Assembly (NCBI RefSeq): GCF_002113885.1
Contig: NW_018404492.1
Span: 2,650,506 to 2,713,542, forward strand
Direction: 5' to 3'
Length of the DNA stretch: 63,037 nt
Origin: Mizuhopecten yessoensis
Taxonomy: Eukaryota
Shown one piece after another: positions 12,430 through 62,606 of the stretch. Every line of letters begins with the position of its first letter. The first letter of the stretch is position 1. The position numbers and the translations under genes were made by a program. The notes beneath the pieces were generated by a model. That model was given only the letters and a program-made list of their open reading frames with translations, searched no databases and had not been told where the DNA came from.

Positions 12430-15400
12430 GTAAGAACCCAGATAACAACGTCACTAGGAAGGGGGGAACCTTCAGGGAGGTAAGAACCCAGATAACAACG
12501 TCACTAGGAAGGGTGGAACCTTCGGGGAGGTAAGAACCCAGATGTCAACGTCACTAGGAAGGGGGGAACCTTTGGGGAGGTAAGAACCCAGATAACAACG
12601 TCACTAGGAAGGGGGGAACCTTCGGGGAGGTAAGAACCCAGATAACAACGTCACTAGGAAGGGGGGAACCTTCGGGGAGGTAAGAACCCAGATAACAACG
12701 TCACTAGGAAGGGGGGAACCTTCGGGGAGGTAAGAACCCAGATAACAACGTCACTAGGAAGGGGGGAACCTTCGGGGAGGTAAGAACCCAGATAACAACG
12801 TCACTAGGAAGGGGGGAACCTTCGGGGAGGTAAGAACCCAGATAACAACGTCACTAGGAAGGGGGGAACCTTCGGGGAGGTAAGAACCCAGATAACAACG
12901 TCACTAGGAAGGGGGGAACCTTCGGGGAGGTAAGAACCCAGATAACAACGTCACTAGGAAGGGGGGAACCTTCGGGGAGGTAAGAACCCAGATAACAACG
13001 TCACTAGGAAGGGGGGAACCTTCGGGGAGGTAAGAACCCAGATAACAACGTCACTAGGAAGGGGGGAACCTTCGGGGAGGTAAGAACCCAGATAACAACG
13101 TCACTAGGAAGGGGGGAACCTTCGGGGAGGTAAGAACCCAGATAACAACGTCACTAGGAAGGGGGGAACCTTCGGGGAGGTAAGAACCCAGATAACAACG
13201 TCACTAGGAAGGGGGGAACCTTCGGGGAGGTAAGAACCCAGATAACAACGTCACTAGGAAGGGTGGAACCTTCGGGGAGGTAAGAACCCAGATAACAACG
13301 TCACTAGGAAGGGGGGAACCTTCGGGGAGGTAAGAACCCAGATAACAACGTCACTAGGAAGGGTGGAACCTTCGGGGAGGTAAGAACCCAGATAACAACG
13401 TCACTAGGAAGGGGGGAACCTTCGGGGAGGTAAGAACCCAGATAACAACGTCACTAGGAAGGGTGGAACCTTCGGGGAGGTAAGAACCCAGATAACAACG
13501 TCACTAGGAAGGGGGGAACCTTCGGGGAGGTAAGAACCCAGATAACAACGTCACTAGGAAGGGGGGAACCTTCGGGGAGGTAAGAACCCAGATAACAACG
13601 TCACTAGGAAGGGGGGAACCTTCGGGGAGGTAAGAACCCAGATAACAACGTCACTAGGAAGGGGGGAACCTTCGGGGAGGTAAGAACCCAGATAACAACG
13701 TCACTAGGAAGGGGGGAACCTTCGGGGAGGTAAGAACCCAGATAACAACGTCACTAGGAAGGGGGGAACCTTCGGGGAGGTAAGAACCCAGATAACAACG
13801 TCACTAGGAAGGGGGGAACCTTCGGGGAGGTAAGAACCCAGATAACAACGTCACTAGGAAGGGGGGAACCTTCGGGGAGGTAAGAACCCAGATAACAACG
13901 TCACTAGGAAGGGTGGAACCTTCGGGGAGGTAAGAACCCAGATAACAACGTCACTAGGAAGGGGGGAACCTTCGGGGAGGTAAGAACCCAGATAACAACG
14001 TCACTAGGAAGGGTGGAACCTTCGGGGAGGTAAGAACCCAGATAACAACGTCACTAGGAAGGGGGGAACCTTCGGGGAGGTAAGAACCCAGATAACAACG
14101 TCACTAGGAAGGGTGGAACCTTCGGGGAGGTAAGAACCCAGATAACAACGTCACTAGGAAGGGGGGAACCTTCGGGGAGGTAAGAACCCAGATAACAACG
14201 TCACTAGGAAGGGTGGAACCTTCGGGGAGGTAAGAACCCAGATAACAACGTCACTAGGAAGGGGGGAACCTTCGGGGAGGTAAGAACCCAGATAACAACG
14301 TCACTAGGAAGGGTGGAACCTTCGGGGAGGTAAGAACCCAGATAACAACGTCACTAGGAAGGGGGGAACCTTCGGGGAGGTAAGAACCCAGATAACAACG
14401 TCACTAGGAAGGGTGGAACCTTCGGGGAGGTAAGAACCCAGATAACAACGTCACTAGGAAGGGGGGAACCTTCGGGGAGGTAAGAACCCAGATAACAACG
14501 TCACTAGGAAGGGTGGAACCTTCGGGGAGGTAAGAACCCAGATAACAACGTCACTAGGAAGGGGGGAACCTTCGGGGAGGTAAGAACCCAGATAACAACG
14601 TCACTAGGAAGGGTGGAACCTTCGGGGAGGTAAGAACCCAGATAACAACGTCACTAGGAAGGGGGGAACCTTCGGGGAGGTAAGAACCCAGATAACAACG
14701 TCACTAGGAAGGGTGGAACCTTCGGGGAGGTAAGAACCCAGATAACAACGTCACTAGGAAGGGGGGAACCTTCGGGGAGGTAAGAACCCAGATAACAACG
14801 TCACTAGGAAGGGTGGAACCTTCGGGGAGGTAAGAACCCAGATAACAACGTCACTAGGAAGGGGGGAACCTTCGGGGAGGTAAGAACCCAGATAACAACG
14901 TCACTAGGAAGGGTGGAACCTTCGGGGAGGTAAGAACCCAGATAACAACGTCACTAGGAAGGGGGGAACCTTCGGGGAGGTAAGAACCCAGATAACAACG
15001 TCACTAGGAAGGGTGGAACCTTCGGGGAGGTAAGAACCCAGATAACAACGTCACTAGGAAGGGGGGAACCTTCGGGGAGGTAAGAACCCAGATAACAACG
15101 TCACTAGGAAGGGTGGAACCTTCGGGGAGGTAAGAACCCAGATAACAACGTCACTAGGAAGGGGGGAACCTTCGGGGAGGTAAGAACCCAGATAACAACG
15201 TCACTAGGAAGGGTGGAACCTTCGGGGAGGTAAGAACCCAGATAACAACGTCACTAGGAAGGGGGGAACCTTCGGGGAGGTAAGAACCCAGATAACAACG
15301 TCACTAGGAAGGGTGGAACCTTCGGGGAGGTAAGAACCCAGATAACAACGTCACTAGGAAGGGGGGAACCTTCGGGGAGGTAAGAACCCAGATAACAACG

Positions 15401-17278
15401 TCACTAGGAAGGGTGGAACCTTCGGGGAGGTAAGAACCCAGATAACAACGTCACTAGGAAGGGGGGAACCTTCGGGGAGGTAAGAACCCAGATAACAACG
15501 TCACTAGGAAGGGTGGAACCTTCGGGGAGGTAAGAACCCAGATAACAACGTCACTAGGAAGGGGGGAACCTTCGGGGAGGTAAGAACCCAGATAACAACG
15601 TCACTAGGAAGGGTGGAACCTTCGGGGAGGTAAGAACCCAGATAACAACGTCACTAGGAAGGGGGGAACCTTCGGGGAGGTAAGAACCCAGATAACAACG
15701 TCACTAGGAAGGGTGGAACCTTCGGGGAGGTAAGAACCCAGATAACAACGTCACTAGGAAGGGGGGAACCTTCGGGGAGGTAAGAACCCAGATAACAACG
15801 TCACTAGGAAGGGTGGAACCTTCGGGGAGGTAAGAACCCAGATAACAACGTCACTAGGAAGGGGGGAACCTTCGGGGAGGTAAGAACCCAGATAACAACG
15901 TCACTAGGAAGGGTGGAACCTTCGGGGAGGTAAGAACCCAGATAACAACGTCACTAGGAAGGGGGGAACCTTCGGGGAGGTAAGAACCCAGATAACAACG
16001 TCACTAGGAAGGGTGGAACCTTCGGGGAGGTAAGAACCCAGATAACAACGTCACTAGGAAGGGGGGAACCTTCGGGGAGGTAAGAACCCAGATAACAACG
16101 TCACTAGGAAGGGTGGAACCTTCGGGGAGGTAAGAACCCAGATAACAACGTCACTAGGAAGGGGGGAACCTTCGGGGAGGTAAGAACCCAGATAACAACG
16201 TCACTAGGAAGGGTGGAACCTTCGGGGAGGTAAGAACCCAGATAACAACGTCACTAGGAAGGGGGGAACCTTCGGGGAGGTAAGAACCCAGATAACAACG
16301 TCACTAGGAAGGGTGGAACCTTCGGGGAGGTAAGAACCCAGATAACAACGTCACTAGGAAGGGGGGAACCTTCGGGGAGGTAAGAACCCAGATAACAACG
16401 TCACTAGGAAGGGTGGAACCTTCGGGGAGGTAAGAACCCAGATAACAACGTCACTAGGAAGGGGGGAACCTTCGGGGAGGTAAGAACCCAGATAACAACG
16501 TCACTAGGAAGGGTGGAACCTTCGGGGAGGTAAGAACCCAGATAACAACGTCACTAGGAAGGGGGGAACCTTCGGGGAGGTAAGAACCCAGATAACAACG
16601 TCACTAGGAAGGGGGGAACCTTTGGGGAGGTAAGAACCCAGATGTCAACGTCACTAGGAAGGGTGGAACCTTCGGGGAGGTAAGAACCCAGATAACAACA
16701 TCACTAGGAAGGGGGGAACCTTCGGGGAGGTAAGAACCCAGATAACAACGTCACTAGGAAGGGGGGAACCTTTGGGGAGGTAAGAACCCAGATGTCAACG
16801 TCACTAGGAAGGGGGGAACCTTTGGGGAGGTAAGAACCCAGATGTCAACGTCACTAGGAAGGGGGGAACCTTTGGGGAGGTAAGAACCCAGATGTCAACG
16901 TCACTAGGAAGGGGGGAACCTTTGGGGAGGTAAGAACCCAGATGTCAACGTCACTAGGAAGGGGGGAACCTTTGGGGAGGTAAGAACCCAGATGTCAACG
17001 TCACTAGGAAGGGGGGAACCTTCGGGGAGGTAAGAACCCAGATAACAACGTCACTAGGAAGGGGGGAACCTTCGGGGAGGTAAGAACCCAGATAACAACG
17101 TCACTAGGAAGGGGGGAACCTTTGGGGAGGTAAGAACCCAGATGTCAATGTCACTAGGAAGGGGTGAACCTTTGGGGAGGTAAGAACCCAGATGTCAACG
17201 TCAGTAGGAAGGGGGGAACCTTCGGGGAGGTAAGAACCCAGATGTCAACATCAGTAGGAAGGAGGACCTTTGAGAAGG
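12385..17278 (+). repeat. 50-bp minisatellite (~97 copies) derived from the exon end plus 5' splice site
   Basis: Unit aacccagataacaacgtcactaggaaggggggaaccttcggggaggtaag; GAG|GTAAGA every 50 nt from 12430 to 17230. Confidence 0.95.
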
Positions 17279-17307
17279 TCTCACATTCTGTATTATTGTT
17301 CTTTAAG

Positions 17308-17566
17308 GTATCTGTTAAGTTCCGTGTGGTGAATGGTACAGCTTTAGAACATCTAGACTTTGAGATGTTGTCGGACACTGTTGTTCTCCTGGATGGAATG
17401 AGAAGTAAGGCCCTGCCAATTATTATTCGGGAGGATCAGGTACCGGAGCAGAGGGAGACTTTCTATGTGGAGATTCTGGACCAGATCACAGGAGATGCAG
17501 TCCTTGGCACTAACACCTACAGTGTTGTGAATATCCTGCCCTCTGATGATCCCACAGGTGCATTTG
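17308..17566 (+). CDS. ADGRV1: ADGRV1 exon (Calx-beta)
   Basis: taag|VSVKFRVVNGTA...EDQVPEQRETF...SDDPTGAF|gtaagt. Confidence 0.88.
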
Positions 17567-17996
17567 GTAAGTGGAGTTTACTTCTGTTGATTGAAGTATG
17601 TAACCTTGTTTCATGCATATTCCAATATGAAGAATGCTTGTTTAAGTATCATGAGATTGCAAAAGATTCAAACATTTAACTTGATGGTTTTGAGCCCAGT
17701 TTGCTGGTTGCTGATCTTGAAGTATGTGTAATTGACTGAAGAGTTCCTTGACAACCATGTTAGTAAATAATGTGTCTATAGTTGAAGGCTTTGTGTAGTT
17801 TAGATTTGGTAGCATGACTAGTTAAGGTCAATCACTGATAACTGCAGAAGATTGAATGCCAATCTAGAATTGGCAAAATAATTCTTAGATAATTGCATTT
17901 CTGACTGTTAGTCTAAGCTATTACTCATTTTGTATTAACCTTTTGGGCTCTTAAAACCATTTTTTTAAGTTTTACTAAATTCAATTTGTTCTGCAG

Positions 17997-19806: not shown

Positions 19807-20670
19807 TAATGATAATTTTGCCGTTGCTTTGGAGGGAGAAAAAGATGAATGTTAATGATAATTTTGCCGTTGCTTTGGAGGGAGAAAAAGACGAATGTTA
19901 ATGATAATTTTGCCGTTGCTTTGGAGGGAGAAAAAGACGAATGTTAATGATAATTTTGCCGTTGCTTTGGAGGGAGAAAAAGACGAATGTTAATGATAAT
20001 TTTGCCGTTGCTTTGGAGGGAGATATAGGCGTATGTTAATGATAATTTTGCTGTGGCTTTGGAGGGAGAAAAAGATGAATGTTAATGATAGTTTTGCCGT
20101 TGCTTTGGAGGGAGAAAAAGACGAATGTTAATGATAATTTTACCGTTGCTTTGGAGGGAGAAAAAGACGAATGTTAATGATAATTTTTCTGTTGCTTTGG
20201 AGGGAGAAAAAGACGTATGTTTATGATAATTTTGCTGTTGCTTTGGATGGAGAAAAAGATGTATGTTAATGATAATTTTGCTGTTGCTTTGGAGGGAGAA
20301 AAAGACGTATGTTTATGATTNCAAAGTAAACCTACTTTCTCATAATAAAATTGTATGCATGGGATGCATGCACCAATTAAAAAAGAATTCAGAACGAATG
20401 TCATNCGTTGCTTTGGAGGGAGAAAAAGACGAATGTTAATGATAATTTTGCTGTTGCTTTGGAGGGAGAAAAAGACGTATGTTTATGATAATTTTGCTGT
20501 TGCTTTGGAGGGAGAAAAAGATGTATGTTAATGATAATTTTGCTGTTGCTTTGGAGGGAGAAAAAGATGTATGTTTATGATAATTTTGCTGTTGCTTTGG
20601 AGGGAGAAAAAGACGTAAGTTTATGATTATTTTGCTGTTGCTTTGGAGGGAGAAAAAGATGTATGTTAAT
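19807..20670. repeat. 46-bp minisatellite (~17 copies) with an N-bounded patch at 20321-20405
   Basis: Unit taatgataattttgccgttgctttggagggagaaaaagacgaatgt. Confidence 0.9.
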
Positions 20671-21120
20671 GGTGAAAACTTCCTTGAGTACAGTGTATGC
20701 TTCATGCTGAAACTTTTAAGTTTTATGCATGTGACACACAGAATAGATATAGAAATTTCCTCAGATCTAGATAAAAAATAACAAAAATCTTTACAGCAGA
20801 TTAATGTATAATGTCAACTTATATGTAGAACAGTTATTTTTGCTTTGATTAGTGTGAAGTATTTATACAAGATGTTCACTATGAAATTTGAAGTCCTAGT
20901 GATTAAAACTGGAAAAGTCAGCTCATGAAAGTAAGAATTTGCAAAACTTGTTTACTGTTATTAAGTTGTCGATGAAGTACCTAAGAGTGCTGTATTCCTT
21001 ATATGAAATCCATTACACACACATACTGTGCACAGGTAGAGGATGAACAGCTGATAAACCAAAGCAATATATAACATACCGTACAAGAACCTTTCTAGGT
21101 TTTATGTTTCCTGTCCACAG

Positions 21121-21383: not shown

Positions 21384-22850
21384 CAACAGCTGCATCCTTG
21401 ATATTCCAGGAGTAACGCTCACTTTCGCTCTCTGCACCCNATACAGTGGTTCGTTTATGAACATTTACACAATCGGTTCATCATTTGCACGAGTTAATCA
21501 ATACATACTGGACAACTAGTACCTCGGACCGAACGGAGCCGGGGGATATAGTTTACGTAATTGAAGTTGTATATNTTCGCTCTCTGCACCCCTGGAATAT
21601 GTCATAGCAAAATCGAAGACTTGGTGTTTGCCTCCATGTGGATAAGACTAGAAGACTGGTTTGATCCTTTGATGTACATCAAAAGAATTATGAAGTTAGA
21701 TGTTGCTCCTCTGTAACCTTCAAAGGACTGGTATAAGCCTAGCAATTGGTCAGGATTTTTTTCCTGAGACCAATCAAATGTCTAGCTGCCTGCCTTAAAT
21801 TTTGCTATGACAAATTCCAGGGTTGCAGAAAGTGTAATTGAGTATAACCCCTGAAGTACCGAGGATGATTCCAGGGTTGCAGAAAGTGTAAGTGAGTATA
21901 ACCCTGGAGTACCGAGGATGATTCCAGGGTTGCAGTGTGTTNAAATAAGCATTATTTCCTTGGTCTTTATTTATTTCATTCGAAGTAAATATAAGTGTAC
22001 TATCGACCTGTGTTATTATATCGTTTTGATTACGGAATTAGAGCAACAGTCGTTGCATAGCTATACCGACAACACGGCCAGCAACGACTTAATTTTCGGG
22101 GGCCAACAACCAGTTTTCGGGAACAAAGGCACAATCTTATTGAATTGTTATGTTCCTGAAAATTGGTTGTTGTTCCTGAAAACTGGTCCATGTCCCGATA
22201 ACTTGGATATGGTTTTTAAATTTAAATGGTGCTCCGCTAATTTGGAGAGTGTTTCCGTAATTTGGGCCATGCAAATATGATTTAGATTGTACATCATTAA
22301 GTTAGCCACGCATAGATTATTTAGCTGGTACATCATTAAGTTGGGTCATGAATTTATGATTTAGACTGTGTTTTGTAAAATTCAATTCTAATTGAAGTTT
22401 ACTGGTATAATAAGGTAGATTAAGTCGGAGAATTGATTTTTTCGTCCATAAGTGTTTCTCAGTGGTTCCGAGGATGATTCCAGGGTTGCAGTGTGTAAGG
22501 GAGTATAACCCCCGGAGTACCGAGGATGATTCCAGAGTTGCAATGTGTAAGTGAGTATAACCCCCGGAGAACCGAGGATGATTCCAGGGTTGCAGTGTGT
22601 AAGTGAGTATAACCCTGGAGTACCGAGGATGATTCCAGGGTTGCAATGTGTAAGTGAGTATAACCCCCGGAGTACCGAGGATGATTCCAGGGTTGCAATG
22701 TGTAAGTGAGTATAACCCCCTGGAGTACCGAGGATGATTCCAGGGTTGCAGTGTGTAAGTGAGTATAACCCCCGGAGTACTGAGGATGATTCCAGGGTTG
22801 CAGTGTGTAAGTGAGTATAACCCCCAGAGTACCGAGGATGCAACAGCTGT
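21384..22850. mobile_element. MITE-like element whose right inverted repeat is tandemly amplified (~52-bp unit)
   Basis: ctctgcacccctggaatatgtcatagcaaaat (~21582-21613) is inverted at attttgctatgacaaattccagggttgcag (~21799); unit gattccagggttgcagtgtgtaagtgagtataacccccggagtaccgaggat repeats at 21814-21940 and 22467-22840. Confidence 0.55.
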
Positions 22851-28969: not shown

Positions 28970-29654
28970 GTAGGCACTGATAATAAAGATGTGTTGGATG
29001 TATATTCTCTTATTCAGAAATATATTATGGCATCAGGGTAACCAAACCTAAATATTTTCACCAAACCTTTTTTGGAATGTGTTACTTTTGCATGTGGATG
29101 ATATATTTCATTGTGCTGGTAAATTCACTCATATCACAACAATTTGGTTTACGAAATTTTGGTCATTTATGTTCAAAAGAAAAGGTCAATTTCTAGAAAA
29201 GATTTGCTTGATACAACTTTGAACTCATAAACTGAACATTGTTATGTTGCCAAAGTTTATCTCAGTCTTGTTAATTCTATAAATCAAAAAAATAAAAATA
29301 TGGTGCAATTTTCAAATCAGTAACTTTTGAAGGATAATGAAATAGTGTACTGTAGAAATGCTTTAAATTCAGTCATTGATTTTGCAGTGATGGGAAATTC
29401 TGAAAATAACTGACAATACCATCAAGAAAAGTTTTATAATTCATATATAGTACAGTCGTTAAATTTACATTTGATTTTATAGCAGGCCTTTAAACACACT
29501 GTATGTTGTCCTGTTTCACCGTGTACTATTTTATACTCACATAGATTGTAACAGAAACGCCACATTTGGCCCAGGTAACCGTGATCCCTGTGGTAAAGGT
29601 GGTTACAACTCCTATAGTAACCTAAGCTAGTGGTATAGATGGCTATGACCCTTG

Positions 29655-30125
29655 AGTTACAGCCTCTGTAGTTACCTTGGGTCTGTAGTAACCTTGGTTA
29701 CAGCCTCTGTAGTAACCATAGTTGCGGCCTCTGTAGTTACCTTGGGTCTGTACTAACCTTGGTTACAGCCTCTGTGGTAACCATAATTGCGGCCTCTGTA
29801 CTTACCTTGGGTCTGTAGTAACCTTGGTTTCAGCCTCTGTAGTAACCATAGTTGCGGCCTCTGTAGTTACCTTGGGTCTGTAGTAACCTTAGTTACAGCC
29901 TCTGTAGTTACCTTGGGTCTGTAGTAACCTTGGTTACAGCCTCTGTGGTAACCATAGTTGCGGCCTCTGTACTTACCTTGGGTCTGTAGTAACCCTGGTT
30001 ACAGCCACTGTAGTTACCTTGGGTCTGTAGTAACCTTGGTTACAGCCTCTGTGGTAACCATAATTGCGGCCTCTGTATGTACTTACCTTGGGTCTGCAGT
30101 AACCTTGGTTACGACCTCTGTAGTA
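29655..30125. repeat. Compound minisatellite
   Basis: Interleaved subunits ggttacagcctctgtagtaacc / ttgggtctgtagtaacc / atagttgcggcctctgt. Confidence 0.85.
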
Positions 30126-31995: not shown

Positions 31996-32085
31996 GTACA
32001 TACACTTATTTCATATTTTTACTTTCTTGTGTAATTATCCGCTATAAATGGTTATTATACATTGTATGGTTTATATGTACAGTAT

Positions 32086-32299
32086 TGTCGTGGATTCGGT
32101 GTGTGTTATTCACACACCGTCACAACAAGTAGTTGTAAATGCTCTCGGCTCCTGAAATCAAAGACAAGGTGGAGGAAAATCACTCACGTGTTGTTCGTTC
32201 GGGTTCAAGATGTATAAGAGACCACGCCGAGATGTCACATCCAGGTTGTCGGCGCGGTTACCGGTCTAAGGGAGATAATTCTAACCAAAATTCACCACA
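32086..32299 (-). repeat. 3' LTR
   Basis: Direct repeat of 37839-38052, preceded on the - strand by the PPT. Confidence 0.95.
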
Positions 32300-32313
32300 C
32301 TCTTCCCCGTTTT
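32300..32313 (-). promoter_or_regulatory. Polypurine tract
   Basis: Minus strand aaaacggggaagag immediately before the 3' LTR. Confidence 0.8.
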
Positions 32314-33114
32314 ATGAAGGCCCCCTCTTGGGGTTGGAAGCTGCTGAGCAGGAATCATGAGGTGGTCTTTCTTGAAGTAGCAGATGCTGGAGATGATTGT
32401 TCTTTTGTGGATTTGGACAAGGTCGGGTCACCCCTTAAGCATAGGGGACCCTTAGCAGGAACACAGTTTCACCGTGCCCAGAAGGGGAAGTTCGGGCCCA
32501 TACTTCATAGATCTAATTCTGTTGATGGGCTTAACTTTAAAGTGCCCTCCTCCAAGGTACAGGACCATTAAAGATATAAACTTTGTGGTTGGCATAGGCA
32601 TACTGTGCCCTTGCCAGGTACTCAGACATGTAAACGTATTGGAATATGTCTGATGGTGTCAAAAGTGGAAGAATGCCCTCCACTTGTATACTGACTGTGA
32701 CAGAGAGCTGATAACACAATCCTACCCCTGAGCAGATAACCGCTAAAGGGGCCGATCCCTCACAGTTTCCGGAGACGGTTGAGCAGAAAACCACTTTGTC
32801 TCTAAAGGCCCGGAGGCTGCCTGAGAGGCAGAGAACCGTCTCTTTCTGAACCTCCGTATTGATAGCTGACTTAAATAAAGCTTTTGATTAAAAGCTGTCT
32901 CCCAGCTGAACGATGTGATCCCATTTACCTGGGTCACAAAAATACTAAGGGATTTTTACTGTCCTTGCTCTTATTACTAAACCTAAGAACACAGCAGTGC
33001 CGTGTAATTTATCAACTATGAAAGTATTGCCTAGTCACCCCCACACCAGTCTAGTCAACTTTTGGGGTGCTCTAGTATACCAAGCTGTGCCGGTGAGTAC
33101 CCCACTTGAGTGGG

Positions 33115-36100
33115 TTACAGCGCTATCGCTATCAGATTGCTCCGCGACAGTTGAGCGACCGTGGCCAGGCTTCTGTAATGGCAGCCCCGTCCTTGGTAGG
33201 GTTTCCCGCCATAGCCTCGAACAGTTCCCTGGCCCCTGCGAACGCGTTCTTTCGCATTTGATAAACAGTATTCAACTACCAGCGGCTCAGAAGATACAAC
33301 GATTTCGACATGTATTTTAAGTCTCTTTTTCCAGTTTGATTCCGGTAGACGGGATAAGAAACGGTCATAGTTACCGATTACACCATCATTGACGAAATGG
33401 ATCTGGAGGACACGCACTGTGTTTCCATACTTGTTCTGTTGTCCTCCCTGGGCTAACAAAACCACCGCATGTAACTCCTGGTCGTCCATTTCTCCCTTGA
33501 CATTATCTGATGACGTCACATTTGGTTTGAAACATTTGATGATGGAGGGAACACAAGTTTCCGTTACCTCTTCCCCGTCAAATGGAAATGAGGCAGATTT
33601 TGGTGTTACCGCCTCATCTCCTTCAATTTTGAGCCCCATTGTTTGTGGTACATGTATATGTTTATTTTGTTGAGGACCAGGAGTATGGGCCTTGTATGTC
33701 AGTGGTACCATACTGTCCACGTCCTCCTCAAACCGTTCACAGTTAGCTCCCGCGGGGTGACTGTTCAGTGGCTCTTCCGAGACCATCACTGGCCTCTGGT
33801 TCTCTCTGGGAACTTCATCAATCTCATTATAGACAGGAGCTTCCCTGGGAAGTTGAGGGATGGCCTCTATTGGCTCTGTAACCCTGTTGTCCCCGTAGGT
33901 ACTCTGGCCTTTCCCAGGAACCATGTCTGCTGTATAACAGCTCCGGGCTTCTCTGTGGAGATGGGATATCACTTCTATATGTTCTTTCTCTCCAAATTTC
34001 TGTCCTTCTGTCATTATGACGGACTTGGCAGTGTTATTCATCACTCTCATTATGGGTTGTTGGGTACCGGGAGGCACTACCGAACCGGCAATCATGACTC
34101 CCCCGGGATGTTGTATGGGTCGAATCGTGGCCGTACTCCCATAAGGTCGAGCCCAGTCCACCGGACAGTGTCCTGTAGTGTTTGGCGATATGGTTACATT
34201 TTGGGCCACCTTGACAGTGGACGATGTCCTCTGCTCCTCTAACCTCGGTGTAATAGGTATTGCCTGATTACCAATGAACAGGACGCCCGCATCTAGGTCG
34301 ATGACACAGTTGTTCCGAGACAGGAAATCCACCCCCAGCAACATGTCGTCCATAATGGGGGCCTCACATACGGTCCAGGGTACCTCAGTGTTCCCTATTC
34401 CGATATTTAGGTCTTTTATTTCCCACACTATCTCCACATTGCCAGTAAAACCCCGGAGCCTCACTCGTTTTCCAAGCACCAGTGGTCCCTCAAGCTTGTC
34501 TACCAGCTCCTGCTTAATCAGTGTCATATTTGCTGCTGTATCCACGACAGCTTGAATAGAAGTTCCATTCAAAGTGAGTGGTATGGTGATGCTACTGCCA
34601 TCTGAGACCGCCAGCTTCACCTCCCTCAAAGGTTGGACCTCCTTTCTAGGCGTGGGTGATGGAGACCTTGATCTCTCTGCCTGGTTATTCCGTCCTTTGT
34701 CGTTACCCCAACTTGCGGGACCGTTGCTCCCTCTATATGGTTCCGGGGACGCAGATGGAGATCTTTGACGGTACGCCTGGGTATTCCGTCCTCGGTCGTT
34801 ACCCCAACTGGCGGGGCTGTTGTTGCCTCTCCCTGGTTCCCATGGGCCCCTGCCTGGTTGATTTTGACCTCGGCCTTGTGACCCTGTGCCAGGTGAGTCC
34901 CCCTGATATCTGGGTGACCAGTTACGGTTCCGCGAAGGACCTTGTTCAGCGTATGGTGACCTGTCGCGGGGTCTACCGTCGTACCTATTACGTCCGTTGT
35001 CCTGGGGTGGACGAGGGTACTGGGGCCTATCGCGATAATCTGATGAGGGATAAGGGACCGGTGTCCTATCACGATAATCCGGAGATCGGTTTCCCCCATA
35101 GTTTTGAGGGAACCCTCGGTCGCGTTCCGGAGATCGGTAGTCACCCCAAGGTGGAGGAGAAGACGGACGGGCAGATACGCCGCCCGCACTAAGCCGGGCC
35201 AGGTATTTCTTTAGCTCCTGTAGCTCATCTTTTGAGAACTGTACAGGGGCTTCCTCTACTTTATCATCCCCCGACTTAGTGCCCTCCGCAAACTCTACCT
35301 GCCTACTAGGGTAGTGCGGCGCGCGAGAACCAAACAAAGCACGCTGATTGGCCACGGAGGCCTTTATGTATTTCAGAGCTTTGTGAACCGTCTTGGGATT
35401 CTTCTCCATGGCTCTCTGTGCTGCCATCTTCTCGCGACAGCCTTTGAGGAATGCCTCCGTAGCGATCTGGTTCCTGGTGGTGGTGTCTGCGTGAGCAAAG
35501 CCATCCCCCGTAATGGTTTGAATCCGCTGAGCAAATTCTGCCAAACTCTCACTCTCCTCTTGTCTAGTGAAGTTTAGCTCCCTGCGGGCCACTACTGGAA
35601 CGTCCTTGTCGCTAAACCGTTCCTTCATCTTTTTCTTGAGTTTTGCGAACCCAAGAGTTCGTGGGAGCTTATCTGCGTACTCCAACGCATCACCCACCAG
35701 ACAATCGAAAAACCGTTGTTTGGTCTTACGGTCCGACCATCTACTGTCTTCTATTATCCTGGTGAATTTAAGAGCGAATGGCTCCCAGCGCTCTTTACCC
35801 GAGTAAGTGGGCATCTTATGTCGCTGAGGACTCCTACTCCTTTGACGATGCCTCTGGTAGTCGTCGGAGGAGTCCCCTGAATCTGTATTGCTGTCCCCCT
35901 CTCCCTCACTGGAGAAATCGGGGTCCGATTCGTCGCTCTCTGACGAATCATCACGTCTGCGCCTTGTAGGCGCACGGCGCGTGCCTTGTGGTTGGCGCAC
36001 ATGTCGCTCACCGAGGACGCGATGCGTGCGCCTTGCAGGACGTTCGTTGTCCAACCTGTCGCGGGTCCGTCTATTTCTATTCTCCTCGCGGGTAGCACGC

Positions 36101-37221
36101 GCCGATGTGGTTACGCCACAATTTGTGCTGGTTATGGGCACCCTCGCGTAAGCACCGGCAACGGCCGAAGGCAGACCATGAGCAGGAATAGTATGTTGTT
36201 CTATCTTAACCTGATTTTGCCCTAACTGAGTGTCTATGTGCCCCAACAGGGGATAGTTACTTATCCCGCAATTGGTGTATGGCAGCCTATTGCCTGGGGG
36301 TATGTTACCCCCCCTATGCTGAAAAGCTGGCTGTGAAGGGTCATATCCCCCAGGATAATTCCCCCCTCCCTGCTTGCGAGGCGTCAAACTAGGCTTGACA
36401 TCTTCCAACAGGAAGTCAGCCCCCTTTTCATTGTCTGATGATAGGCATGACAAGGGCAGACTCATTTCCCCTTCAACTTTTGGGGCCGATTCCAGCTTAA
36501 ACCCCCACTTAGAAGCAATGGGTGCAATGGGTGCATTGGCACCTCCAGCTGTCCATGTTGATACATGGGCACCCTGATCTTGACCCCTTACATACCTTCC
36601 ATCCTTCGGGATAGCTTGTAAAATAGGGTCAAACTCTGACTCCTTCTGTTTAGGAATCATTGTCTGCGAGTTCGAGTATGGTGGCACGGAGGTTGAGGTA
36701 GCATGAGTGGTACCCCTATCCCCCCAGGGTGACCAGCTATTTATTTGTGGCCTCTGGCTGACATACTGACCACCACTAGGTGTAGTCAGTAGCATAGTGC
36801 CGGGAGTAGAGCTCTTTTTCGGAGGCGAGGCAGCACGAGCCGCCAGACTCTCTGATTTTCTAAGAGCCTCCGTCTCCAATGTTACCATTAACTCCCTGAA
36901 TTGGACCCGCAGTTCCTTAACTTCCTGCTTTATGTCCATAACCTCGTCCTCCTGTCTGTCTAGCCTATCTGCCCGTGATGAGGTCGACCGGGTTGGTGAT
37001 TGCGCCTCTACAGGGGCAGTGACCATTATGCCCGTGATGACCCCATCACTTAGCCATTTCTGCCACTTCTCAATGCCCACTCTGGAAACAGTCACCAGTT
37101 TCTGCAGAGTGAGCCCCTCATCATCTCTTATACTCAAGATTTTCTGTGCCGTCGCGGGGCCTAAACCCTCCAACGTGCACAGCTCATCTTCTGTAGCTGT
37201 CCGTATATTTATGACAGCCAT
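33115..37221 (-). CDS. HhH-Gag-aspartic protease polyprotein (1368 aa from first ATG), no RT/RNase H/integrase
   Basis: N-terminal INIRTATEDELCTLEGLGPATAQKIL (HhH); capsid region PTYSGKERWEPF...RQEESESLAEFAQRI; protease VVDTAANMTLI...MLLGVDFL; no YxDD or DDE motif seen. Confidence 0.88.
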   Translation of the reverse strand: MAVINIRTATEDELCTLEGLGPATAQKILSIRDDEGLTLQKLVTVSRVGIEKWQKWLSDGVITGIMVTAPVEAQSPTRSTSSRADRLDRQEDEVMDIKQEVKELRVQFRELMVTLETEALRKSESLAARAASPPKKSSTPGTMLLTTPSGGQYVSQRPQINSWSPWGDRGTTHATSTSVPPYSNSQTMIPKQKESEFDPILQAIPKDGRYVRGQDQGAHVSTWTAGGANAPIAPIASKWGFKLESAPKVEGEMSLPLSCLSSDNEKGADFLLEDVKPSLTPRKQGGGNYPGGYDPSQPAFQHRGGNIPPGNRLPYTNCGISNYPLLGHIDTQLGQNQVKIEQHTIPAHGLPSAVAGAYARVPITSTNCGVTTSARATREENRNRRTRDRLDNERPARRTHRVLGERHVRQPQGTRRAPTRRRRDDSSESDESDPDFSSEGEGDSNTDSGDSSDDYQRHRQRSRSPQRHKMPTYSGKERWEPFALKFTRIIEDSRWSDRKTKQRFFDCLVGDALEYADKLPRTLGFAKLKKKMKERFSDKDVPVVARRELNFTRQEESESLAEFAQRIQTITGDGFAHADTTTRNQIATEAFLKGCREKMAAQRAMEKNPKTVHKALKYIKASVANQRALFGSRAPHYPSRQVEFAEGTKSGDDKVEEAPVQFSKDELQELKKYLARLSAGGVSARPSSPPPWGDYRSPERDRGFPQNYGGNRSPDYRDRTPVPYPSSDYRDRPQYPRPPQDNGRNRYDGRPRDRSPYAEQGPSRNRNWSPRYQGDSPGTGSQGRGQNQPGRGPWEPGRGNNSPASWGNDRGRNTQAYRQRSPSASPEPYRGSNGPASWGNDKGRNNQAERSRSPSPTPRKEVQPLREVKLAVSDGSSITIPLTLNGTSIQAVVDTAANMTLIKQELVDKLEGPLVLGKRVRLRGFTGNVEIVWEIKDLNIGIGNTEVPWTVCEAPIMDDMLLGVDFLSRNNCVIDLDAGVLFIGNQAIPITPRLEEQRTSSTVKVAQNVTISPNTTGHCPVDWARPYGSTATIRPIQHPGGVMIAGSVVPPGTQQPIMRVMNNTAKSVIMTEGQKFGEKEHIEVISHLHREARSCYTADMVPGKGQSTYGDNRVTEPIEAIPQLPREAPVYNEIDEVPRENQRPVMVSEEPLNSHPAGANCERFEEDVDSMVPLTYKAHTPGPQQNKHIHVPQTMGLKIEGDEAVTPKSASFPFDGEEVTETCVPSIIKCFKPNVTSSDNVKGEMDDQELHAVVLLAQGGQQNKYGNTVRVLQIHFVNDGVIGNYDRFLSRLPESNWKKRLKIHVEIVVSSEPLVVEYCLSNAKERVRRGQGTVRGYGGKPYQGRGCHYRSLATVAQLSRSNLIAIAL

Positions 37222-37819
37222 GACAAAATATAAAGTTCCAAGAAAGAAATAAGTCAACACACTTAATTAAACAATTACACAATTATGTACAGGGACTTAT
37301 ATCAACAGTGCTATAGTAGACACGTGCCACCGTCCCGTACAAAATTCCAACGATTACAACTACGATTTACAGTTTACAAAATAATTTCTAATTCCTAAAA
37401 TAACTAATTTCTAACCTAATGTAATAATAACCTAACTAAACATATAATAATTTCCTTACAATATAAAAATAATATCCTATACTAACGATAACTCATGTCT
37501 CGCCTGTCATATGTATTCCGCCAATATGGGCGGCCCACTACACAGGCGAATGAAGTTCCGTGAAAACCTAACAAGTAAACTAAATTAAATTAAATATAAA
37601 TTTCAGAACGGCAGTGAAAACACCGCCGACTCTGAATTACCCCTAATAAATAATTAAATAAACAATAATAAACTGCTAGAACTGTCCCAAAATCTCTCAC
37701 TCGTAATTCGCGCACTGGTCAACAAAATGGCCAGCGCACGTGTGAGCGAGAGGGGACCAGCAAGGTAGAAAAAATATATGGAAAAAAATGTCAAAATAGT
37801 GCGAATAGCGTGAGTTCTT

Positions 37820-37836
37820 TCTCACTTATGACACCA
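37820..37836 (-). promoter_or_regulatory. Primer-binding site, tRNA-Leu type
   Basis: Minus strand TGGTGTCATAAGTGAGA, 2 nt after the 5' LTR; close to TGGTGTCAGAAGTGGGA, the complement of the metazoan tRNA-Leu 3' end (2 mismatches). Confidence 0.75.
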
Positions 37837-37838
37837 AT

Positions 37839-38052
37839 TGTCGTGAATTCGGTGTGTGCTATTCACACACCGTCACAACAAGTAGTTGTAAATGCTCTCG
37901 GCTCCTGAAATCAAAGACAAGGTGGAGGAAAATCACTCACGCGTTGTTCGTTCGGGTTCAAGATGTATAAGAGACCACGCCGAGATGTCACATCCAGGTT
38001 GTCGGCGCGGTTACCGGTCTAAGGGAGATAACTCTAACCAAAATTCACCACA
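37839..38052 (-). repeat. 5' LTR
   Basis: Direct repeat of 32086-32299, followed on the - strand by the PBS. Confidence 0.95.
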
Positions 38053-38360
38053 GTATCACAACCACATTGCAAGATTTAAATTGATATAATTTACATATTT
38101 TAATCCAAGAGAAATCAACTGTTTGAATTAATTGGTTTTTAAATATCTCCATTTTAATTACAAAACAGAGAACGTTCACCAACTGTAAGCTATAGATTTT
38201 TTTTCTTACCAGAATGAAATGAAGTGAAAGGATCCATAATTTAGCTATTTCATGATATGTGATTCATTTGATCGCTACTTAGACGATAGCCTGTGTATTT
38301 TTGTCCCCTCCCCTGTCGACTGCCATGTCTTTTTTACACTCGTACTGTTTGGTTACTTAG

Positions 38361-51644: not shown

Positions 51645-51876
51645 CTCGACAATGAATTGAAACGTGGATTATAAAGTATAAGATAATAAAAGTGATGTCC
51701 TTAGCAAATGTAGATGACGGAAACATGTTATTTTCGTATATATACATTGCCGATACCTTAGAGTTATATGCCAAAACACAAAATAAATGTCAATTAATGC
51801 TGCAGTACTGTTTGTTCTTTCTGATAGGACAAAATCTTTAGCATGAATTCTATTGAATCTGTTTTCCTTTGCACAG

Positions 51877-52119
51877 TTGTCGAAGAAATCGGCACGGCAA
51901 AGATCCCCCTGGTGAGACTGGGAGGGGACTATGGGAAGCAGACGGTTCTCTTCTCGACACAAAACACCACGGCCCTAGAAGGCATCGACTACAGTGTTCC
52001 GCGGCATGAGGTCATATTTGACCAGGGCCAGACTCGGGCCACCATCAACATTACTGTCCATGATGACTCCGAGATGGAGCATGCAGAGCGCTTCAATATC
52101 ATGCTCAACAGTATTGTGG
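51877..52119 (+). CDS. ADGRV1: ADGRV1 exon (Calx-beta)
   Basis: VEEIGTAKIPLVRLGGDYG...DDSEMEHAERF...|gtaagt. Confidence 0.88.
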
Positions 52120-52139
52120 GTAAGTATCTGCTATACATT

Positions 52140-52840
52140 GGCCTACTTTCAAGGACGCAGAGGTCATACTCGTTAAAAAATTCAAGCGACATTTTCTTAA
52201 GAACCAAACGTTTCAGAGCCATGTTATTTGGGTATGATCTGTAGACCAGCAGTGTAAACCTTTCTTATATATTATGAATAGGTCATAGGTCAAGTTTCAG
52301 TGCTGGCTTGGGTCAAAGGTCAGCATGGATTGTTGTGGGTAAACAGTTTTAAGAATCTTCTGATGAAGTTTAATAATGCTCAGGGTCCTATTATTGGGCC
52401 AGTAGGGACCTGTGATGGAATGGTTCTTCATATTAATGACCTTGACCAAGGTCAAGGTTACAGTTCAAATATATTAAAAAAAGTTATCATATGAATCATA
52501 AGTTCTACAGCCATAATACTCTGATACATTATGTCCTAGGGTTGTAACTTCAAATTGGTTGGGATCCCCATCACATTATCATTTGTATGCTTAGGATTAT
52601 CTCAATACTCCAGGCTTTCTATAGGGAAATGTACTTGGGTCATTACATGGATCGGGATCCCAACCCTATAACCATATAGATGTGTATGCAGATCTCAACC
52701 AGATTTGTTTGGCGCATAATTTGGACAGGAGAGATGGAGTCTGAAAATGTGGAAATATTTACAACACTTTTATTAATGAGGGCATTTTGCCATGATTGCT
52801 TAAATATGCAGGATTGATACAGGCCTTCCGGTCCTCTTGT
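52140..52840 (+). mobile_element. HINE/pearl-like element, 3' part
   Basis: Ends ttttgccatgattgctt...gatacaggccttccggtcctcttgt, like 2930-2990. Confidence 0.55.
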
Positions 52841-53367: not shown

Positions 53368-54200
53368 ATACTGTAAAAGTGTGACACTCTGTTATACTGT
53401 AACAGTGTGACACTTTGTTATACAGTAACAGTGTGACACTCTGTAATACTGTAACAGTGTGACACTCTGTGATACTGTAACAGTGTGACACTCTGTAATA
53501 CTGTTACAGTGTTACACTCTGTAATACTGTAACAGTGTGACACTCTGTAATACTGTTACAGTGTTACACTCTGTAATACTGTAACAGTGTGACACTCTGT
53601 GATACTGTAACAGTGTGACACTCTGTAATACTGTAAAAGTGTGACACTGTAATACTCTAACAGTGTGACACTTTGTAATACTGTAACAGTGTGACAATTT
53701 GTAATACTGTAACAGTGTGACACTCTGTAATACTGTAACAGTGTGATACTGTTATACTGTAACAGTGTGACACTTTGTAAAACTCTAACAGTGTGACACC
53801 CTGTAATACTGTAACAGTGTAACACTCTGTAATACTGTAACAGTGTGACACTCTGTAATACTGTAACAGTGTGACACTGTAATACTCTAACAGTGTGACA
53901 CTTTGTAATACTGTAACAGTGTGACACTCTGTAATACTGTAACAATGTAACACTTTGTAATACTGACAGTGTGACAATTTGTGTAATACTGTAACAGTGT
54001 GACACTCTGTAACAGTGTGATACTGTTATACTGTAACAGTGTGACACTTTGTAAAACTCTAACAGTGTGACACTCTGTAATACTGTAACAGTGTGACACT
54101 CTGTAACAGTGTGATACTGTTATACTGTAACAGTGTGACACTTTGTAATACTGTAACAGTGTGACACTGTAATACTGTAACAGTGTGACACTTTGTAATA
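53368..54200. repeat. ~26-bp minisatellite (~33 copies)
   Basis: Unit gtaatactgtaacagtgtgacactct. Confidence 0.92.
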
Positions 54201-55666: not shown

Positions 55667-57121
55667 CTTCATTCCCAATAGATAATCCAGCCACCATCAT
55701 TCCCAGTAGATAATCCAGCCACCTTCATTCCCAGAAGATTATCCAGCCACCTTCATTTCCAATAGATAATACAGCCATCAGCATTCCCAGTAGATAATCA
55801 AGACACCTCCATTCCCAGTAGATAATCCAGTCACCTTCATTTCCAGTATATAATCCAGCCTCTTTCATTCTCAGTAGATAATCCAGCCACCTTCATTCCC
55901 AGTAGATAATGTATCCACCTTCATTCCCAGTAGATAATCCAGCCACCTTCATTCCCAGTAGATAATCCAGTCCCCCTCATTTCCAGTAGATAATCCAGTC
56001 ACCTTCATTTCAAGTATATAATCCAGCCTCTTTCATTCTCTGTAGATAATCCAGCCACCTTCAATCCCAGTAGATAATGTATCCACCTTCATCCCCAGTA
56101 GATAATCCAGCCACCTTCATTCCCAGAAGATTATCCAGCCACCTTCATTTCCAATAGATAATACAGCCATCAGCATTCCCAGTAGATAATCAAGACACCC
56201 CCATTCCCAGTAGATAATCCAGTCCCCCTCATTTCCAGTAGATAATCCAGTCACCTTCATTTCCAGTATATAATCAAGCCTCTTTCATTCTCACTAGATA
56301 ATCCAGCCACCTTCATTCCCAGAAGATAATCCAGCCACCTTCATTCCCAGAAGATTATCCAGCCACCTTCATTTACAATAGATAATACAGCCATCAGCAT
56401 TCCCAGTAGAAAATCAAGACACCTCCATTCCCAGTAGATAATCCAGTCACATTCATTCCCAGTAGATAATCCAGTCACATTCATTCCCAGTAGATAATCC
56501 AGCCACCTTCATGCCCAAAAGATTATTTTCAGTAGATAATCCAGACACCTTCATTCCCAGTAGATAATGTATCCACCTTCATTCCCAGTAGATAATGTAT
56601 CCACCTTCGTTCCCAGTAGATAATCCAGCCACCCTCATTCCCAGTAGATAATCCAGTCCCCCTCATTTCCAGTAGATAATCCAGTCACCTTCATTCCCAG
56701 TAGATAATCCAGTCACATTCATTCCCAGTAGATACTCCAGCCACCTTCATTCCCAGTAGATAATCCAGTCACCCTCATTTCCAGTAGATAATCCAGTCAC
56801 CTTCATTCCCAGTAGATAATCCAGCCACCTTCATTCCCAAAAGATTATTTTCAGTAGATAATCCAGCCACCTTCATTCCCAAAAGATTATTTTCAGTAGA
56901 TAATCCAGTCACCTTCATTCCCAGTAGATAATCCAGCCACCTTCATTCCCAAAAGATTATTTTCAGTAGATAATACAGCCACATTCATTCCCAGTAGACA
57001 ATCCAGACCCATTTATTATGCAGCCAGCTTCATTTCCTTTAGATAACCCAGCCTTCTTCATTCCCAGTAGATAATACATCCACCTTCATTCCCAGTAGAT
57101 AATCTAACCTCCTTCATTCCC
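55667..57121. repeat. ~28-bp minisatellite (~50 copies)
   Basis: Unit ttcattcccagtagataatccagccacc. Confidence 0.92.
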
Positions 57122-58002
57122 CGTATATGTGGCTGGATAAGACATTTGAGTTACTTTCAACAGTACAATGTAATACAATATGTACTGGCTTTATAGTGAG
57201 ACAACAAGCTGATTGGTGGCTGGGTGAATAAATCTAGACAACATCAAAATTGTTAATATTTTTTAGTTCCCTGGTATTTTCCTGTTAGTAATGTCTTAAC
57301 TTCAAAAGGAATTACTTTTTCTGACCATAATTTGTTTAATGAATCATTATCACAATGGTTAATTTCACTTCTTCAGTAATGTACATTTCATCCATCAACA
57401 TACATCGACAGGAAAATAAATTGTTTTTATAATTTCAATTCCTTTCAACTCCATTGTTTGGACCTACATTCTCAATAGTGAATACAGAAGGAAGTTTTCA
57501 TGTAAAACACAAGGAAGAGATACAGATGTGGAGCTTGGGTGTCTATCAAGCTTTGTTCAGCATTACACCTAATTCCTGATGTACTACAAGAAAAAGAAAA
57601 AAACTTGTGTCTTGGTATTTTAAGATATATATGTATACAAATTACACAGCATTATGTGTAAACTCCAATGTGGTAATGTCGACCAAACAATCATCATTAT
57701 ACTCATCATTATACCCATCATATATTCATTAACATGCTGGTATCTTTTTAACGATAATATACATTTAGATAGCTTTGCACTTTACCCAAACTTTCAAAGT
57801 ATATAATACATTAACTTTGTTTTGTAACAAAGAAGTCTCGGCATATGCAATCATAACATTGGCGTAATAACATCTAGAAAGTTTTTTGTAATGAGACTAA
57901 ATTAAACTTATTAATGGAAATTAACTTGTTTCCCCTGAAATTTCATAATGAGCTATTCCAACCTTTGAATCGTAGGAGTTCAATTGAGTCTTCAGGGGCG
58001 AA

Positions 58003-60613: not shown

Positions 60614-60888
60614 GTAAGGGTGTGCTGTCATAAGTACCCACGGCTTAAATGATTCCTACACTCCAGATACAGACTGATTGGGGGGGGAACAAGGATGAAA
60701 CAGTGTTCCCTTATGCTTATTGTGTGACCTGTATATTGCTATATAAAATTATTCTGAAAATTTCTTAATCTTGTGAAATAACAAAAAATGACCTTGCAAC
60801 ATTCTGGCCTTATAACCTACATTGTTTAAATACTTATATTATGACCTCAATATTTATCAATTATGGACTTTTGTCGAAGTTATAAGAT

Positions 60889-61534: not shown

Positions 61535-61599
61535 GATATGGGATATTGTTTGATATTCTCAGATCTGTTTATTCATATGCTGAGATCTTATGACCGTAG

Positions 61600-62575: not shown

Positions 62576-62606
<31 letters not shown>

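Follow-up and report, generated by a model that had tools for sequence, protein, structure and literature searches.

Sequence-independent recognition of double-stranded DNA by helix-hairpin-helix (HhH) domains is found in proteins with very different functions. The bacterial competence receptor ComEA (PDB 8dss, 8dfk, 2duy) is a membrane-anchored or periplasmic protein that binds dsDNA without sequence preference through a C-terminal HhH domain of the HHH_3 family (Pfam PF12836), while the metazoan protein EEPD1 (PDB 9yi2) combines two N-terminal HHH_3 modules with an endonuclease/exonuclease/phosphatase domain, and the C-terminal HhH domain of the chromokinesin KIF22/Kid (PDB 2edu) holds a cytoplasmic machine on chromosome arms. 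Some retroelements encode parts that attach the particle or pre-integration complex to host chromatin. MLV p12 and the foamy-virus Gag chromatin-binding sequence are short peptides that bind nucleosomes, chromovirus integrases carry a chromodomain, and the barrier-to-autointegration factor BAF is an HhH-containing, sequence-independent dsDNA bridge that is used by retroviral pre-integration complexes and supplied by the host rather than by Gag. Some LTR retrotransposons also encode an enzyme in a third ORF, such as the DEDDy exonuclease or GDSL esterase of bdelloid Juno/Vesta (PMC5408684).

Here we describe an LTR element in a 63,037-nucleotide stretch of Mizuhopecten yessoensis DNA (hereafter the window) whose Gag protein opens with a small module of predicted ComEA/EEPD1-type fold. 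Many marine-invertebrate Ty3/gypsy relatives share this start, and we found no description of it in the papers that could be searched. The "helix-hairpin-helix" of the Cer1 CERV paper is a coiled-coil hairpin and not an HhH DNA-binding motif, and matches to "ComEA" in retrotransposon papers were author names such as Comeau.

A non-autonomous LTR element with an N-terminal HhH module

The original prediction placed a ComEA-like HhH domain at the start of a Gag ORF at 37000-37221, and this observation is confirmed, although the peptide lies on the minus strand. Translation of 37000-37221 on the plus strand gives stops, whereas the reverse strand gives an open frame at 33115..37260 whose first ATG, at 37221, begins exactly the peptide that had been reported. 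Two further points require correction, as the ORF encodes Gag, a protease and a 286-residue unmatched tail rather than Gag alone, and the element that carries it has no RT or integrase. The layout of the element is given in the table.

Features of the element, in window coordinates (residue numbers refer to the product of the single ORF)
Feature	Position	Strand	Residues	Description
LTR element	32086-38052	-		5,967 bp
Target-site duplication, upstream copy	38053..38056	-		ATAC, read on the element's strand
5' LTR	37839..38052	-		214 bp, TG...CA termini; begins TGTGGTGAAT
Putative primer-binding site	37821..37836	-		Starts TGG two bases after the LTR; first 8 bases TGGTGTCA
ORF	33118-37221	-	1,368 codons	
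HhH module	37027..37221	-	1-65	First hairpin canonical (G-L-G); second partly retained (R-V-G)
Long predicted helix, probably a coiled coil	36829..36975	-	about 83-131	Inside a 56-residue run free of Pro and Gly
Capsid-like Gag core	35242..36009	-	405-660	
Arg/Ser/Gly/Pro-rich segment	34615..35241	-	661-869	Basic; usual nucleocapsid position; internal 87-nt repeat 96 nt apart (34658-34744 and 34754-34840)
Retropepsin-type aspartic protease	34297..34614	-	870-975	Active-site stretch D-T-A-A
Post-protease segment	33976..34296	-	976-1082	Still alignable to relatives' Pol
ORF tail	33118..33975	-	286 aa	No detectable relatives; takes the place of RT-RNase H-integrase
Polypurine tract	32300..32313	-		Directly upstream of the 3' LTR
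3' LTR	32086..32299	-		214 bp
Target-site duplication, downstream copy	32082..32085	-		ATAC

The two LTRs were found as a direct repeat and differ at 4 of 214 positions (98.1% identity), consistent with a young insertion. The start of the 5' LTR resembles that of the Mytilus relative, the first 8 bases of the putative primer-binding site are shared with the Mytilus edulis relative, and a purine run equivalent to the polypurine tract precedes the Mytilus 3' LTR. No other copy of the element lies in the window, and an Rfam scan of the window found nothing. The paired LTRs, short target-site duplication, putative primer-binding site and polypurine tract, together with the capsid-like Gag and retropepsin, are those of a Ty3/gypsy (Metaviridae) element. 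However, no RT, RNase H or integrase was found in any frame, and searches of the ORF tail and the 3' untranslated part by blastp, blastx, tblastx and Pfam revealed no remnant of RT, integrase or TatD. We therefore regard this copy as a non-autonomous derivative of the lineage and not as a complete member. Mizuhopecten yessoensis carries a copy with the same truncated layout.

The identity of the N-terminal module is supported by several approaches. The isolated 74-residue piece scores 36.3 bits against Pfam HHH (cut-off 24, E 4e-9) and 34.8 bits against HHH_3 (cut-off 27, E 1.9e-8), with 31 and 28.3 bits, respectively, within the full ORF. By sequence it hits ComEA (8dfk, E 2.5e-5) and EEPD1 (9yi2, E 1.1e-4) in the PDB, while a profile of 45 family N-termini hits EEPD1 at 5.7e-20, ComEA at 5.6e-15 and KIF22 at 8e-7, as well as the HhH regions of RadA/RAD51, uS13 and Tex. 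An AlphaFold model built with 45 homologues (pLDDT 85) predicts a compact fold with helices at residues 11-15, 22-35, 39-46 and 50-59. The best Foldseek hit is ComEA 8dss_B (probability 1.0, rmsd 2.6 Å over 63 columns), 2duy gives a TM of 0.60 on the target, and PolC, the Thermus ComEA-related protein and Tex are also among the best hits, although Foldseek E-values are weak (0.1) because the domain is small. A BFVD fold search found ComEA-like proteins of giant viruses but no retroviral or Metaviridae Gag. HHH_3 domains have two Gly-hydrophobic-Gly hairpins. The first is canonical here (G-L-G), and its second Gly is at least 90% conserved in the family, while the second hairpin reads R-V-G here and has lost both glycines in most relatives, which have a conserved Trp instead.

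Downstream of the module, a single-sequence AlphaFold model of residues 1-110 was poor overall (pLDDT 53) and was used only for the following helix, which is predicted at residues 83-109, with a mean pLDDT of 77 over its last two 10-residue blocks (91-110); the coiled-coil state is inferred. A disordered linker then leads to the capsid-like core, which matches Pfam Retrotrans_gag and PNMA only weakly here but scores above cut-off in relatives, many of which pass Retrotrans_gag. The core alone has no solved relative by sequence, and its profile weakly hits the PNMA2 capsid (E 0.017). Residues 660-880 contain no cysteine and no CCHC pattern, whereas 47 of 64 HhH-bearing relatives have a zinc knuckle. 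The protease scores 43.8 bits against gag-asp_proteas (cut-off 28.2). We considered its D-T-A-A motif as a lesion and rejected this, because eight relatives share it and six have D-T-G-A, making it a family variant. BLAST alignments of the post-protease segment to the Pol of three relatives (protein P0062 and loci L002 and L004) stop at about residue 1082, and no Pfam family matches it. The tail has no Pfam hit and no similarity to any relative's Pol or ORF3.

A Gag family with an ancestral HhH start

Three word-index protein searches, with the whole ORF, residues 1-75 and a 39-sequence alignment, found nothing beyond the query's own member, probably because candidate lists were swamped by low-complexity words. 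An exhaustive HMMER search, in contrast, returned 2,440 relatives at E<=1e-3, and for all but one of the 150 listed (P0076, matched on the protease) the best-scoring stretch falls on the Gag part of the query. Of these 150 best relatives, 64 carry the module, as do 63 of the 89 with at least 150 residues upstream of the Gag core, and 57 of the 64 modules start within residues 1-11. As an independent check, Pfam HHH_3 was found in 29 of 39 relatives. Parsimony on a Gag-core tree places HhH at the root, so the fusion is the ancestral state of a large Gag family. A Pro/Gly-free run of at least 40 residues follows the module in 47 of the 64. The module shows 31% mean column identity against 12% for whole proteins, and its dN/dS against the Mizuhopecten copy is 0.28, similar to the Gag core (0.25), with 0.10 for the protease and 0.85 for the tail, which is conserved in that copy but evolving almost neutrally.

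Full Gag-Pol examples are P0074 and Mytilus edulis P0173, and relatives P0074, P0062 and P0173 and loci L004-L008 have the gypsy order PR-RT-RNase H-IN. Complete relatives have three ORFs, namely HhH-Gag, PR-RT-RNase H-IN and, downstream of pol, a TatD-family DNase, and occur in mussels and in marine metagenome assemblies, although the host range of the family is documented only for bivalves. No LTR pairs were detected in L001-L003, where the contigs were too short or the flanks were cut. The TatD enzyme differs from the DEDDy exonuclease of Juno/Vesta, and the window copy has lost it; a literature search found no description of this feature either. A Macro domain is present in one Pol and in one Gag-containing protein. 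The relatives' integrases show only Integrase_H2C2, rve and Integrase_p58_C, with no chromodomain, and the window copy has no integrase, so that it does not qualify as a chromovirus. Steamer-like elements are described as having only a nucleocapsid-like Gag similarity (PMC11046912), which, judged from that description rather than from an RT tree, differs from this family.

A model for the HhH module of Gag

The interpretation given in the original prediction, of an HHH_3/ComEA-type domain fused to Gag, is supported, as both domain identity and architecture hold. The two outcomes that would have overturned it did not occur, since an HhH fold is predicted and full-text searches found no description of such a Gag. 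Its functional suggestions, a chromatin or cDNA tether with a BAF-like role, remain inference, and it could not have revealed that the fusion is ancestral to a large family or that this copy is non-autonomous. Our analysis establishes the element, the order of domains in its ORF, the ancestral position of the module and the three-ORF organization of complete relatives, and we are highly confident of the domain identity and the family-wide fusion. DNA binding, the placement of the module on the particle and its role are inferred.

In Ty3 and retroviral particles, the parts of Gag upstream of the capsid domain face outward and the nucleocapsid end faces the genome. By analogy, it is plausible that the module, on a long flexible arm, is displayed on the outside of the particle and made multivalent by the adjacent helix and by capsid assembly. 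In this model, it would bind dsDNA without sequence preference through the backbone contacts typical of HhH hairpins, docking the particle or pre-integration complex on host chromosomes, for example during open mitosis, before integration. The copy described here would borrow RT and integrase from an autonomous relative. We consider DNA binding somewhat more likely than not, chromatin docking as the main role only tentative, and the model as a whole, mechanism included, slightly favored. Several observations weigh against it in the absence of binding data. Only one canonical DNA-contacting hairpin is conserved in most family members, the module is not basic (net charge -2 here, family median -1), HhH domains can also bind RNA or proteins, and the outward-facing topology is borrowed from Ty3 and retroviruses.

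Comparison with the closest systems is instructive. The module has about 32% identity to ComEA and the same predicted four-helix fold, but it forms the first 65 residues of a eukaryotic Gag-protease ORF inside LTRs, without a membrane anchor or oligomerization domain of the ComEA type, so that only the domain is shared. EEPD1 is the best whole-protein profile hit and, as an animal protein with N-terminal HHH_3 modules, a conceivable source of the captured domain, although it has two modules fused to a nuclease rather than one fused to Gag, and the per-domain score is higher for bacterial ComEA (57 bits) than for EEPD1 (41 bits), leaving the origin unresolved. KIF22 is a weaker match with a different carrier protein and domain position, but performs the kind of job proposed here. 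MLV p12, the foamy-virus sequence and the chromodomain are the proposed functional analogues, with unrelated folds, while BAF was not among the sequence or fold hits.

An alternative, which we consider unlikely, is that the module binds the element's own newly made cDNA, inside or on leaving the particle, compacting or shielding it in a built-in BAF-like function that prevents autointegration or nuclease attack. The fold and sequence family are those of sequence-independent dsDNA binders, and the TatD ORF3 of complete relatives suggests that DNA handling matters in this lineage. Conversely, the module lies a family median of about 320 residues upstream of the Gag core, at an end that by analogy points away from the packaged genome, and most relatives (47 of 64) keep a separate zinc-knuckle nucleocapsid for nucleic-acid handling. 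Slightly less likely still is an assembly, trafficking or RNA-binding device with no DNA role, making protein or RNA contacts as some HhH domains do in Tex, uS13 or RAD51. The degenerate second hairpin with its conserved Trp, the slightly acidic charge and the profile hits to those proteins speak for this, but the best hits by far are the dsDNA binders ComEA, EEPD1 and KIF22, and the first hairpin and the residues after it are the most conserved positions. That the module is a functionless remnant of a captured host exon, or a chance or annotation artefact, is very unlikely, since although youth alone could explain the intact ORF of this non-autonomous copy, the Pfam match, the single uninterrupted ORF inside the LTRs, the dN/dS of 0.28 and retention of the module in 64 clusters sharing less than 50% identity contradict it.

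Implications for retroelements of marine invertebrates

Members of this Gag family are annotated in public proteomes under names such as "interaptin-like" or "hypothetical protein", and recognizing the architecture would improve transposon annotation in bivalve genomes. The other captured parts of the family, the TatD DNase as ORF3 and the Macro domain, show that LTR retrotransposons of marine invertebrates carry a wider accessory toolkit than the catalogued one. It is possible, although we think it less likely than not, that the window samples an undescribed lineage of marine-invertebrate Ty3/gypsy elements that handles DNA with its own proteins, combining an outward-facing dsDNA-binding HhH tether on Gag, with a built-in p12/BAF-like function, with a TatD DNase and in some members a Macro domain. 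If so, chromatin docking by a retroelement capsid could be tested directly with a simple, well-understood DNA-binding fold.

How retroelement particles find and hold on to chromosomes is known for only a few systems, namely MLV p12, foamy-virus Gag, chromodomain integrases and host BAF, and in each of these it relies on short peptides or host factors. A whole family of Gag proteins that begins with a classical, sequence-independent DNA-binding fold would be a new and easily testable answer to the same problem.

Architecture of the ORF and of the element that carries it

The plus strand translates into stops across 37000-37221, whereas the reverse strand carries an ORF whose product of 1,368 residues starts with exactly the peptide that the original prediction had reported. 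The observation therefore holds, with the coordinates right and the strand being minus. The 74-residue piece scores 36.3 bits against Pfam HHH (cut-off 24) and 34.8 bits against HHH_3 (cut-off 27), with the same families still passing in the full ORF, and by sequence alone it matches both ComEA (8dfk, 2.5e-5) and the animal protein EEPD1 (9yi2, 1.1e-4). Downstream of this helix-hairpin-helix (HhH) module the protein comprises a predicted long helix, a low-complexity linker, a capsid-like Gag core where Pfam Retrotrans_gag and PNMA are weak, an Arg/Ser/Gly/Pro-rich segment, a retropepsin (gag-asp_proteas, 43.8 bits), about 100 further residues that still align with the Pol of relatives, and a C-terminal tail. 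The Arg/Ser/Gly/Pro-rich segment is free of cysteine and lies where most relatives have a zinc knuckle, and it may stand in for the nucleocapsid as a basic, disordered nucleic-acid binder. The protease motif reads D-T-A-A, a form shared by eight relatives, and is thus a family variant rather than damage. Neither the tail nor the untranslated stretch before the polypurine tract matches anything in relatives or in Pfam.

The ORF lies between two direct repeats that differ at four positions, begin with TG and end with CA, and are flanked by the 4-bp duplication ATAC. A putative TGG-initiated primer-binding site follows the 5' LTR after two bases, and a purine run abuts the 3' LTR. The element is 5,967 bp long and has no RT, RNase H or integrase in any frame, and is therefore non-autonomous. 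A second copy, at a locus of Mizuhopecten yessoensis (L009), is 87-91% identical at the DNA level and has the same truncated layout, tail included, although it is broken by frameshifts, has about 860 bp inserted in its 5' LTR and lacks element positions 2963-3432. The truncated form has therefore spread as a family of its own. The two best partial protein relatives, 82% and 88% identical, are also from M. yessoensis, and the window thus comes from a scallop or a close relative.

The window is unusually rich in short tandem-repeat arrays, together with a very regular satellite of strong purine skew. Two ORF pieces with Calx-beta domains lie on the plus strand on either side of the element, and the retrotransposon probably sits antisense in an intron of a large Calx-beta-repeat gene.

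Coordinates of the features in the window and in related loci
Feature	Sequence	Coordinates	Strand	Residues	Details
5' LTR	window	38052-37839	-		214 bp; read on the element's strand
3' LTR	window	32299-32086	-		214 bp; read on the element's strand
ORF, open frame	window	33115..37260	-		first ATG at 37221
ORF, coding part	window	33118-37221	-	1,368 residues
HhH module	window			1-65
Predicted long helix	window				56-residue Pro/Gly-free stretch
Capsid-like Gag core	window			about 405-660
Arg/Ser/Gly/Pro-rich segment	window	34615-35241	-		no zinc knuckle
Internal 87-nt repeat of that segment	window	34658-34744 and 34754-34840			96-nt spacing
Retropepsin	window			870-975
ORF tail	window	33118-33975	-	286 residues
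Untranslated stretch before the polypurine tract	window	32314-33117	-		roughly 800 bp
50-bp satellite	window	12385-17262	+		97.6 copies, 97% matches, G+C about 0.5
ORF overlapping the last 99 bases of the satellite	window	17164-17679			Calx-beta domain hit
ORF piece with Calx-beta domain	window	17164-17676	+		E 4e-7
ORF piece with Calx-beta domain	window	51843-52241	+		E 3e-17
Short tandem-repeat arrays	window	2265-2896, 19807-20671, 22468-22840, 29650-30124, 53368-54200, 55667-57125, 60881-61538, 62040-63037			periods of 21-305 bp
ORF with weak, sub-threshold C-type lectin match	window	5894-6646	-	251 residues	19.6 bits (cut-off 22.6)
Non-autonomous copy	L009, Mizuhopecten yessoensis NEDP02005166.1	7723-11346			compared with window 33118-37221
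TatD-family ORF3	L004, Mytilus edulis CAJPWZ010003190.1	9616-11127			E 1.7e-43
TatD-family ORF3	L003	17705-18385
TatD-family ORF3	L005	9427-12018
TatD-family ORF3	L007	8870-10138
TatD-family ORF3	L008	8987-9526
Pol with N-terminal Macro domain	L002, ENA ERZ23486758 metagenome scaffold	4755-6600			E 7e-42

The HhH-Gag fusion among relatives

An exhaustive search with residues 1-1200 gave 2,440 relatives, and among the best 150 listed every best-scoring stretch but one falls on the Gag part of the protein. These 150 representatives, each standing for a cluster at 50% identity, were searched with the N-terminus of the window ORF and then with a profile. The same module occurs in 64 of them, and in 63 of the 89 that have at least 150 residues ahead of the Gag core, with 57 of the 64 modules starting within residues 1-11. 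As an independent check, Pfam itself finds HHH_3 in 29 of 39 relatives, alongside Retrotrans_gag in 25 and a zinc knuckle in 30. On a tree of the Gag cores the HhH-bearing proteins are spread throughout, and parsimony puts HhH at the midpoint root with 19 changes, although many of these may be truncated gene models. Full polyproteins with the order HhH, Gag, zinc knuckle, PR, RT, RNase H, IN exist, one being the protein P0074 from a metagenome assembly and another the Mytilus edulis protein P0173, which has cluster mates in Mytilus galloprovincialis and Mytilus coruscus. P0173 is the only spliced gene model used, and its locus was read as separate ORFs.

The Mytilus edulis relative at locus L004 has 215-bp LTRs 10.1 kb apart, whose first bases, together with the first eight bases of the primer-binding site, resemble those of the window element. 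Between pol and the 3' LTR, and hence inside the LTR pair, it carries a third ORF with a TatD-family DNase domain. The same gene order of HhH-Gag, Pol and then TatD recurs at four further loci of relatives, L003, L005, L007 and L008, with Pfam E-values across the five loci of 1.7e-43 to 2e-23. L006, a locus from a Tara Oceans marine metagenome, has an unassigned ORF3. In L002 the Pol of an HhH-Gag relative starts with a Macro domain ahead of the protease, and one Gag-containing protein in one of our alignments of relatives (A2) also has a Macro hit. The window copy has none of these additional domains.

Predicted fold and sequence constraint of the module

With 45 family N-termini as the alignment, AlphaFold gives a model with pLDDT 85 and four helices. 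The best Foldseek hit in the PDB is ComEA (8dss_B, probability 1.0, rmsd 2.6 A over 63 columns, 32% identity), followed by the HhH regions of PolC, the Thermus ComEA-related protein and Tex, albeit with weak E-values, as expected for a 60-residue domain. The family profile hits EEPD1 (5.7e-20, two modules), ComEA (5.6e-15, with the best single-domain score of 57 bits) and the chromosome-binding HhH of KIF22 (8e-7). The alignment shows a strongly conserved first hairpin, whereas in most members the second hairpin has lost its glycines and is followed by a nearly invariant Trp; the window copy still reads R-V-G at this position. We therefore call it a ComEA-type (HhH)2-like module with one canonical hairpin.

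Mean column identity is 31% in the module and 36% in the Gag core, compared with 12% over whole proteins. Between the window copy and the Mizuhopecten copy L009, dN/dS is 0.28 for the HhH module (74 codons), 0.25 for the Gag core, 0.10 for the protease, 0.71 for the post-protease segment and 0.85 for the tail. The module has thus evolved like the functional parts of the protein, while the tail, although conserved in the Mizuhopecten copy, has evolved nearly neutrally, like non-functional sequence. Divergence between the two copies is a mosaic, with the 5' part (HhH and linker) being 75-78% identical and the 3' part 93-94% identical, and synonymous divergence is very uneven, at 0.76 in the module against 0.07 in the tail. 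This suggests that the two copies are recombinants of different lineages, with recombination taking place during reverse transcription.

Novelty and proposed role of the HhH module

The interpretation put forward in the original prediction, that a ComEA-like HhH domain is fused to the N-terminus of Gag, is supported, although the roles in tethering or packaging suggested for it remain inference. It had been set out beforehand that this reading would fail if no HhH fold were predicted or if the fusion were already a catalogued feature of a named Gypsy clade. An HhH fold is predicted, and full-text literature searches, in a collection without most subscription journals or Repbase Reports, found no paper describing either an HhH DNA-binding domain on a retrotransposon Gag or a TatD ORF in an LTR element. 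The nearest published parallel for the ORF3 is the DEDDy exonuclease of the bdelloid Juno/Vesta elements (PMC5408684), while Steamer-like elements of mussels are described with only a nucleocapsid-like Gag similarity (PMC11046912). The Mytilus proteins are nonetheless public, so that automatic domain tables already hold the architecture.

Our data show the identity of the module, its position and its conservation, while DNA binding, the exposure of the module on the particle and any docking on chromosomes are inferred. Two points speak against DNA binding, namely the degenerate second hairpin and the slightly acidic net charge of the module, although the ComEA stretch aligned by sequence is not basic either. 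The main alternative to the model that we favor is that the module binds the element's own cDNA, and a lesser one is that it makes an RNA or protein contact.

In Ty3 and retroviral particles, the parts of Gag upstream of the capsid domain lie on the outside and the nucleocapsid end lies inside with the genome. By analogy, a module at residue 1, held on an arm of about 320 residues (family median), should be exposed, and the adjacent predicted helix and the capsid lattice should make it multivalent. The HhH hairpins of ComEA, KIF22 and BAF bind the DNA backbone without reading bases. We therefore favor a model in which the module would act as an external dsDNA tether, docking particles or pre-integration complexes on host chromosomes.
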